A DNA stretch of 64,000 nucleotides from Macrostomum lignano (taxonomy: Eukaryota): positions 186,001 through 250,000 of the forward strand of contig NIVC01000524.1 in assembly GCA_002269645.1 (NCBI GenBank), in the 5' to 3' direction. The notes below the pieces were generated by a model. The model ran no database searches. It was not told where the DNA came from and was given only the letters and a program-made list of their open reading frames with translations. This document shows positions 7,243 to 45,867 of this stretch, piece after piece. Position 1 is the first letter of the stretch. The number at the start of each line of letters is the position of its first letter. The translations under genes were made by a program, and so were the position numbers.

Positions 7243-7524
7243 TCAGACCTCGTCGATGGTCTGGCCAGCTGAAGGGTTGCGGCTCCTTGTCCGGCTGCTC
7301 TTCTGCCGGACAATCTGCAGCATGATCAGCTTCCGGTTGCCTGCCCGCTCGCCCAGGCCCACCAGGCAGCGTTTGTCCCGGCTCAGGATCACCTTGAAGA
7401 TGTCGATGTTGGAGGTGAACCAGCACAGCTGGGACCCGTCGTTCAGCTTCCAGACCCGGATGGAGCCGTCCCAGCTGCCCGAGGCCAGGATCTCGGAGTC
7501 GGCGCTGAAGCACACCGATTGCAC
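7243..7524 (-). CDS. Exon 22 (terminal): WD40 repeats 7-8 (VQSVCFSADSEILASGSWDGSIRVWKL...TIDEV*)
   Basis: Acceptor aatgcag|GTG; the junction gives GHTEDVQSVCFSAD; TGA at 7243-7245. Confidence 0.9.
   Translation of the reverse strand: MQSVCFSADSEILASGSWDGSIRVWKLNDGSQLCWFTSNIDIFKVILSRDKRCLVGLGERAGNRKLIMLQIVRQKSSRTRSRNPSAGQTIDEV

Positions 7525-45867: not shown

Follow-up and report, generated by a model that had tools for sequence, protein, structure and literature searches.

A gene in a stretch of Macrostomum lignano DNA (contig NIVC01000524.1, positions 186,001 to 250,000; these 64,000 nucleotides are called the window, and all positions below are numbered within it) is very probably the M. 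lignano orthologue of PHRED-1, a type I membrane protein with LamG and EGF domains outside the cell and WD40 repeats inside. The gene lies on the minus strand, with its ATG at 45867 and its stop at 7243. A preliminary description of this locus had proposed that it encodes a new receptor class, in which a LamG/EGF ectodomain, one transmembrane (TM) helix and a full cytoplasmic WD40 propeller are joined in a single chain. Over 48,391 bases the window is 100% identical to this contig in assembly Mlig_3_7 (GCA_002269645.1). RNA-based gene models and flatworm orthologues support the existence of this single type I chain. However, the architecture matches that of the published PHRED-1 family (bioRxiv 10.1101/131789), and thus it is already known and does not define a new receptor class. 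The preliminary description had itself named such a match as grounds for rejecting its proposal.

Assignment to the PHRED-1 family

PHRED-1 (Pharynx regeneration defective-1; dd_Smed_v6_4789_0_1) was described in the planarian Schmidtea mediterranea as a protein of 2536 amino acids (aa) that carries a signal sequence, 6 LamG domains, 9 EGF domains, a TM segment and 3 intracellular WD40 repeats (Adler & Sánchez Alvarado 2017, bioRxiv 10.1101/131789). Its transcript is 8 kb long as established by 5' rapid amplification of cDNA ends (5'-RACE), and at the protein level a band of > 270 kDa is recognised by an ectodomain antibody. The gene is expressed in muscle and the protein is found on the muscle-cell surface, where its depletion by RNA interference (RNAi) yields thickened and disorganised muscle fibres, along with secondary defects in pharynx and gut regeneration. 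The same authors call PHRED-1 a divergent neurexin-1 homologue, and report this type of domain set only in lophotrochozoans (S. mansoni, Lottia, Octopus, Capitella and cestodes) (bioRxiv 10.1101/131789). Our literature search found no later study of PHRED-1 and none naming Macrostomum. The muscle and RNAi data belong to the S. mediterranea protein, whereas the M. lignano gene is known from sequence.

Four structural features of the family are present in the M. lignano protein: a signal-like segment, multiple LamG and EGF domains, a single TM helix, and intracellular WD40 repeats with a conserved C-terminus. These appear in the same order as in PHRED-1, and the C-terminal WD region is strongly conserved. 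Several differences are also evident. The M. lignano protein is longer (3041 versus 2536 aa) and is extended at the N-terminus by ~650 aa that contain ConA-like domains of the Laminin_G_3 type. Its cytoplasmic linker is 294 aa long and A/G/Q-rich, compared with ~120-250 aa in other orthologues, and it has fewer EGF-like repeats than the neodermatan orthologues. In addition, 3 WD40 repeats were assigned to PHRED-1 by SMART, whereas AlphaFold2 predicts a closed and probably 8-bladed propeller for M. lignano.

The 100-aa antigen peptide used in the planarian study matches a planarian sequence (P0297, a 2500-aa open reading frame (ORF) on an 8037-nucleotide (nt) Logan contig) with 57% identity (E 2e-31), and this match ties the orthologue set described here to PHRED-1. 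The peptide gave no direct match to the M. lignano protein, in which this region is too divergent. Two further long orthologues are a trematode protein from Dicrocoelium dendriticum (P0141, CAH8652770.1, 2542 aa) and a cestode protein from Anoplocephala perfoliata (P0291, KAM7534273.1, 3038 aa). Each of these three proteins carries five Laminin_G_2 matches, EGF repeats, a TM helix with a CKPGCC motif and a C-terminal WD40 region, and both P0291 and P0297 open with signal-peptide-like segments. The window protein is collinear with all three, with 42-43% identity in the WD40 region to the trematode, cestode and planarian proteins. For P0297, the ectodomains are 25-26% identical and the WD40 regions 42.5% (E 2e-88).

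Searches with the WD40 part as query returned proteins with 40-44% identity over 85-96% of its length. These include a 666-aa Schistosoma japonicum model named 'F-box/WD repeat sel-10' (P0019), two Logan contigs (P0021 and P0022) and a MetaClust sequence (P0020). P0019 and P0022 share the TM helix and the juxtamembrane motif LLAGLLLALLLLISALIWACWRCKPGCC. On one contig (L005, 2536 nt), an uninterrupted ORF encodes a LamG C-terminus (...REIVLGADRKLNGTFDGVIGGFYWNGRYL) in frame upstream of the called Met, followed by the TM helix and the WD40 region. LamG-coding exons are likewise present upstream of the annotated start of the S. japonicum gene (L004, CM038288.1; 427-504 and 9938-10000, ~9.5 kb apart), and P0019 is therefore a 5'-truncated model. 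A query with the M. lignano ectodomain did not find LamG exons in the 10 kb upstream of this model; a trematode contig peptide found them. Fragments from Echinococcus and Hydatigera cluster with P0291, and P0020 clusters at >= 90% identity with P0297. Thus, the 'sel-10' model and the Echinococcus models named 'WD repeat protein' and 'WDR5A' (XP_024348312.1 and KAH9279945.1) appear to be 5'-truncated models of PHRED-1 orthologues.

An exhaustive profile search mostly returned proteins with 9-37 canonical WD repeats, and only matches in a single stretch were informative. Few matches covered the full profile in this way; with their cluster mates, they comprise the D. dendriticum and A. perfoliata proteins, the Echinococcus and Hydatigera fragments and P0297. 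Among the matches listed, which multi-repeat WD40 proteins saturate, the full-profile matches that could be identified were all from flatworms. A query comprising the TM helix, linker and WD40 region was dominated by low-complexity words, such that M. lignano proteins and generic WD40 matches were all it yielded, and a query with the ectodomain gave three Macrostomum matches among the matches listed and was uninformative beyond the genus.

Gene structure and the continuity of the chain

Between 45867 and 7243, the minus strand shows long, GC-rich open segments that alternate with introns. The gene comprises 25 GT-AG coding exons from the signal-peptide ATG to the stop, with a summed length of 9124 nt and, after correction of the frame in exon 5 (see below), a product of 3041 aa. 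The preliminary description had spliced 23 segments into a chain running from 45867 to the stop. This chain holds, but the count does not, being 25 exons plus an optional cassette exon of 39 nt.

Three deposited models contribute to this structure. Model P0016 (PAA81565.1, BOX15_Mlig000372g7; 2155 aa, ending ...GQTIDEV) carries LamG domains, the EGF cluster, TM helix, linker and WD40 region, and maps onto the window exon by exon with 100% identity and with a single GT-AG solution for each of its 20 introns. Exons for the first 890 aa, which are absent from P0016, were reconstructed from splice signals. Model P0138 (BOX15_Mlig000372g4, 2489 aa), which derives from a third genomic copy, starts at the signal peptide and reaches into the linker. 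Over aa 1-2474 it shares 98.8% identity with the corrected window model, with the 13-aa cassette exon as the sole gap. Model P0015 (g6, PAA68487.1/PAA82890.1, 707 aa) covers the TM helix to the stop in two sister copies. The Mlig_3_7 annotation from which such models come was built from RNA-seq transcripts (StringTie, TACO) and a de novo transcriptome rather than ab initio, with transcripts split at experimentally mapped spliced-leader (SL) trans-splice and poly(A) sites by TBONE, and ORFs called by TransDecoder (PMC5730564).

Exon 1 (45789-45867; donor GTAAGT, phase 1) encodes the initiating Met and a signal-peptide-like segment (MSLQQQWLLLQLLCIVGLQAIAIDTA; aa 5-28, mean hydropathy 1.94). The same N-terminus is present in P0138, in agreement with the signal peptide proposed earlier at this position. 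Exon 2 (42871-43524) uses the acceptor CCCGCAG, followed by CT, as does P0138, and encodes the first ConA-like region. Exon 3 (39575-40811) encodes ConA-like domains that include the Pfam Laminin_G_3 match (aa 330-465 of the first model), exon 4 (39012-39156) begins a Laminin_G_2 domain, and in exon 5 (38312-38932) one LamG domain ends and the next begins, with a proline-rich spacer between them. Exons 6-9 (33048-32638, 32121-31793, 31270-31011 and 28351-28219) and exons 10-12 (27195-27045, 26685-26395 and 26269-24693) were placed by exact mapping of P0016. Together they span 24693-33048 and encode LamG domains and a cluster of six EGF-like repeats. Exons 13-15 (22992-22912, 21985-21758 and 21037-20567) complete a LamG domain and add the last EGF-like repeat and the LamG domain closest to the membrane. 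In total, Pfam detects one Laminin_G_3 domain (E 2e-18) and six Laminin_G_2 stretches (one plus five, E up to 2e-50). Matches to the EGF and EGF_TEN models are weak, and 7-8 Cys-patterned EGF-like repeats are seen by eye. These results agree with the LamG/ConA and EGF ectodomain that had been read from the DNA. The cassette exon (30053-30015, CASSGGSAFSDCE, with AG/GT borders) is retained by the g4 model, which comes from the sister copy, whereas the g7 model of the window copy skips it. This difference probably reflects alternative splicing inside a LamG region.

Exon 16 (19093-19598) encodes the stalk, the TM helix (VVSAWIAGLLLALLLLLSSLLWAF; DNA 19230-19159) and a Cys-rich juxtamembrane motif (CHCKPGYCLCC). 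The helix, previously placed at ~aa 2355-2377, occupies aa 2347-2370 and is the single strong candidate in the chain (Kyte-Doolittle peak 2.63); another, moderately hydrophobic segment corresponds to a LamG strand and was discounted. Exons 17-21 (18493-18431, 18311-18258, 17387-17232, 16633-16598 and 15945-15844) and most of exon 22 (13861-13430) encode the cytoplasmic linker, which is low in complexity and rich in A, G, S, T, R and Q. It had been described as a disordered segment of ~290 aa, close to the 294 aa observed. Of its six exons, four are small (63, 54, 36 and 102 nt). Exact mapping of P0016 places the start of exon 22 at 13861 and not at the top of the ORF (13969). Exons 23-25 (12846-12550, 12023-11496 and 7524-7243, stop included) encode the WD40 propeller and a short basic tail.

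Nearly every intron of the gene holds a long tandem array, with periods from 4 to 87 nt (7551-9886, 10465-11408, 12069-12522, 19623-20535, 23291-24506, 27347-28113 and 44945-45600, among others). Spurious long ORFs arise from several of these arrays on either strand (such as plus-strand 7273-9960 and minus-strand 7446-9368), and 60-aa 'genes' are listed in GenBank inside them.

The junction between exons 22 and 23 joins the linker to the propeller. Exon 22 ends with ...ENVFLSENIK (GAG AAT ATC AAG) at 13430 (donor GTGAGA) and exon 23 opens at 12846 with VDCALITQNSKYVVTG (GTC GAC TGC; acceptor ...ACACAG), and the two sides agree in phase (0). The propeller opens with NVFLSENIK, encoded by the final 27 nt of exon 22 (13456-13430), such that intron 22 (12847-13429, 583 nt) interrupts the first blade. 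In the AlphaFold2 model, the beta-strand VFL directly precedes the junction and the next strand, CALI, directly follows it, as expected from the earlier proposal that this sequence begins a WD blade. In S. japonicum, the homologous peptide RQNVYNMEGMKVDCVVITKNSKYVVTGSGMGPPQVWD is encoded within one exon (L004 21334-21477), which reads ...QNVYNMEGMK-VDCVVITKNSKYVVTG across the junction site. Between sister copies, which diverge by 1.8-1.9% in introns, exons 21-24 of the linker and WD40 region are free of mismatches over 1362 nt. These three observations place the junction inside one coding unit. Intron 22 is indeed almost entirely (TTAG)n (133 copies of the 4-nt unit at 12880-13411 by TRF; TAAC on the plus strand). 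From this composition it had been argued that no room is left for a separate promoter. This argument is weak on its own, because SL trans-splicing is widespread in M. lignano and ~7% of assembled transcripts are polycistronic precursors (PMC5730564), but the conclusion that there is one chain stands on the other grounds given here.

The same features of M. lignano transcription would permit a two-gene arrangement, in which a LamG/EGF/TM gene is followed by a separate WD40 gene with an internal promoter or SL acceptor, as in an operon, and the fusion is an artefact of read-through on a polycistron. If left unspliced, the donor at 17232 gives a stop after ...AADSRVGALK. Furthermore, the ORF of exon 22 extends upstream of its acceptor to 13969 with an in-frame ATG (MQRQRKEELYHH), and an older ab initio model covers the WD region only (P0017, 377 aa). 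However, TBONE, which cuts at SL and poly(A) sites, left the TM helix to the WD40 region as a single gene in three genomic copies. The spliced ORF remains open across six linker exons, including micro-exons of 36 and 54 nt, and exon 23 lacks a start codon of its own before KVMDG. The TM helix, linker and WD40 region also occur in one ORF in a trematode contig, a planarian contig and the cestode and trematode gene models, and the planarian ectodomain antibody band of > 270 kDa fits the whole chain (bioRxiv 10.1101/131789). We therefore consider the two-gene arrangement largely refuted and highly improbable.

A more limited proposal, which we judge to be improbable, is that the gene makes an extra soluble, cytoplasmic WD40 isoform from a start in intron 21 (ATG at ~13939, MQRQRKEELYHHLLTRINLVSASLLQ into exon 22). 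The reading frame of exon 22 stays open for 36 codons, with a Met among them, on the upstream side of its acceptor, and short WD-only models exist in other flatworms (P0020, 501 aa; P0021, 453 aa; Echinococcus, 492 aa). Such a run of open codons is unremarkable in GC-rich sequence, however, and the short models look 5'-truncated: P0020 clusters with the 2500-aa P0297, and the Echinococcus and Hydatigera fragments with the 3038-aa P0291. No transcript evidence for this isoform was seen.

The predicted cytoplasmic propeller and its membrane tether

The last 419 aa were modelled by AlphaFold2 with a 29-sequence alignment (mean predicted local distance difference test score (pLDDT) 86, predicted template-modelling score (pTM) 0.83). 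Residues 1-41 of this segment are disordered, with pLDDT < 50 in the stretch directly upstream of the propeller. These are followed by an all-beta domain that forms a closed propeller of 32 strands with pLDDT > 90. The fold extends to RKLIMLQI (7312), and the propeller with its short basic tail corresponds to 7243-13456 on the minus strand. Pfam detects WD40 (E 7e-21), with two repeats over threshold and many partial propeller models. The best Foldseek matches are 8-bladed WD40 proteins (Rsa4/NLE1, ODA16, Fbw7, Tako8 and TBLR1), with query-normalised template-modelling scores of 0.61-0.67, versus ~0.50 for 7-bladed WD40 proteins. These predictions suggest that the propeller is complete and probably has eight blades, which agrees with the 7-8 repeats counted previously. 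Likeness to Rsa4/Notchless, ODA16/DAW1, Fbw7 and TBLR1 is one of fold class only (15-19% identity), and none of these proteins is membrane-anchored or part of a receptor. A sequence search of the Protein Data Bank (PDB) gave generic matches only, to the two canonical WD repeats. The alignment of orthologues reveals invariant blocks in the WD40 region (SGSWDGS.RVW, CWF.SNI and LGER...RKLI).

The propeller had been suggested to derive from capture of an NWD1/NWD2-like gene, but the data lend this origin no specific support. NWD1 and NWD2 have WD40 repeats in common with the M. lignano chain, but the chain carries no NACHT domain: no NACHT or AAA-type match was found by Pfam in any of the three protein segments. 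The Beta-prop_NWD2_C model, one of dozens of generic WD40 models with matches, remains below threshold (with the cut-off at 33 bits, P0141 scores 30.9 and P0291 scores 23.5) and scores far below the WDR3, THOC3, Prp19 and CDC20 models, and the nearest folds are generic 8-bladed WD40 proteins.

Directly after the TM helix, the motif W-A-x-x-x-C-K-P-G-x-C-x-x-C (19093-19160) is conserved from Macrostomum to cestodes and trematodes, and the TM helix together with CKPGxC is kept in P0019, P0022, P0141, P0291, P0297 and P0145. Its cysteines are candidate palmitoylation sites. The motif goes unmentioned in the PHRED-1 paper.

The neurexins, CASPR (Neurexin IV), Crumbs and EYS have in common with this protein an ectodomain of LamG (LNS) and EGF domains, roles at cell contacts and, for the membrane-bound members, type I topology. 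However, neurexins, CASPR and Crumbs have short PDZ- or FERM-binding tails with no folded cytoplasmic domain, whereas the M. lignano tail is ~670 aa long and includes the propeller. Its C-terminal residues are not conserved among orthologues. The LNS-EGF-LNS triple cassette of neurexins is not matched either, as the EGF-like repeats of M. lignano are clustered rather than interleaved. In SCAP and Sec12/PREB, as in the M. lignano protein, a WD40-type propeller is held at the cytoplasmic face of a membrane, where it serves as a docking or regulatory platform. SCAP, however, is a polytopic protein that contains a sterol-sensing domain, Sec12 is a type II protein of the endoplasmic reticulum (ER), and neither has an extracellular adhesion module. 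Beta-prop_SCAP is among the weak Pfam matches, but no specific relationship to SCAP or Sec12 is seen beyond generic WD40 similarity.

By analogy with these proteins, the ectodomain may bind ligands in the matrix or on neighbouring cells, as do neurexin, CASPR and Crumbs. The membrane-tethered propeller would then act as a built-in docking platform that recruits cytoplasmic partners to contact sites, and palmitoylation of the juxtamembrane cysteines would anchor the membrane-proximal end of the tail in the bilayer. Recruited partners would probably be cytoskeletal or myofilament-organising, and might limit or pattern myofibrils. A bolder version of this scheme holds that the cytoplasmic part of PHRED-1 proteins forms a complete 8-bladed propeller, held at the membrane via a possibly palmitoylated CKPGxC motif, which signals or recruits substrates in its own right, for instance as an adaptor of the Fbw7/DCAF type or as a hub that anchors myofilaments, and that an N-terminal ConA-like extension specific to the M. 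lignano lineage changes the range of ligands. If true, PHRED-1 would be an adhesion receptor with a built-in effector scaffold, without counterpart in ecdysozoans or vertebrates. We regard this version as speculative and unlikely in its entirety. The DWD-box motif (WDxR) was not seen in the canonical blades on inspection by eye, with no tool run.

State of the window copy and meaning for the family

The window copy cannot be read as one chain without the restoration of two bases in exon 5. Relative to the sister copy on NIVC01000443.1, one C is missing at ~38456 and another at ~38437, where the sister sequences GAGCCCGG and CAGCCCGAG become GAGCCGG and CAGCCGAG, respectively. As a result, the frame shifts after ...PPPPARVEP and before PRDKVSF..., a site that the RNA-based model of the sister copy crosses without interruption as ARVEPGGGLTSPRDKVSF. 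The two deficits also explain why the annotated coding sequence (CDS) of the window copy (P0016) begins only at 38391, the first Met downstream of the break. The preliminary description had implied that a 25-nt intron (GTAGAG...CACCAG) bridges the break. This intron is too short, and both the DNA and the RNA-based model of the sister copy read through it; the break is due to the two missing C's instead. A 52-nt intron was likewise ruled out by comparison with the DNA of the sister copy.

In the adjacent intron 5, an apparently intact Ty3/gypsy-type long terminal repeat (LTR) retrotransposon is present on the plus strand at 33457-38033, antisense to the gene and not part of its product. Its LTRs (33457-33636 and 37854-38033; 180 nt each) are 99% identical, and a 1307-aa ORF (33668-37588) encodes protease, reverse transcriptase (RT), RNase H and integrase. 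The element inserted into a tandem array with a 20-nt period. The sister copy on NIVC01000443.1 lacks it, which indicates a recent, copy-specific insertion.

The two deficits in exon 5 could be residual PacBio homopolymer errors or real mutations. If they are real, the window copy might be a decaying homeologue that makes a truncated, signal-less P0016 product or nothing functional, while the sister copies supply PHRED-1. Two frame-breaking deficits within 20 nt of one another, an annotated CDS that begins after them, and the highly duplicated nature of the DV1 genome (PMC5730564) are consistent with such decay, and the young retrotransposon in the neighbouring intron, found in the window copy only, leaves it possible. 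However, loss of single C's from C-runs in GC-rich sequence is a classic residual PacBio error that is hard to polish in the presence of copies that are 95-99% identical, and the odd truncation of models from other copies suggests that this gene often carries assembly-level indels. No other stop or frame break occurs in the remaining ~9.1 kb of CDS. Sister copies diverge by 0.3-0.4% in exons and 1.8-1.9% in introns, an approximately five-fold difference that we read as a sign of selection. The intact remainder of the CDS favours sequencing error, and we consider decay of the window copy to be a real but lesser possibility.

Several points weigh against the interpretation of this locus as a PHRED-1 orthologue whose propeller serves as a scaffold. 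Given the interruption in exon 5, this locus may make a product without the signal peptide and the rest of the first ~890 aa. Transcript support comes from deposited models and orthologues, not directly from M. lignano RNA reads. Orthology is based on the antigen peptide, collinearity and architecture, and not on a reciprocal best hit. The mollusc and annelid homologues reported in the planarian study were not confirmed among the matches listed, which multi-repeat WD40 proteins saturate. Lastly, we infer both the scaffold role and palmitoylation, and the planarian paper itself states that the function of the WD40 part is unknown (bioRxiv 10.1101/131789).

Elsewhere in the window, positions 1-2042 on the plus strand hold the 3' part of a convergent coiled-coil gene. 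The fragment matches a BRE1-type coiled coil, and the GenBank neighbour at this position is a 914-aa product with a CCDC39 Pfam match. On the other side, a 405-aa open segment at 58044-59258 on the plus strand matches the Major Facilitator Superfamily (MFS_1, E 4e-15) and is probably a transporter-gene exon upstream of the PHRED-1 gene.

The assignment to the PHRED-1 family gives an identity to a previously unnamed M. lignano 'hypothetical protein' (BOX15_Mlig000372g4/g6/g7). To what is known of this family, the present analysis adds the prediction of a full propeller, a juxtamembrane motif that is conserved, and a ConA-like extension at the N-terminus of the Macrostomum protein. It also identifies several public flatworm 'WD repeat' models as truncated PHRED-1 models. 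Since M. lignano is tractable to transgenesis, it offers a practical system in which to ask what the intracellular propeller binds, a question left open by the planarian paper.

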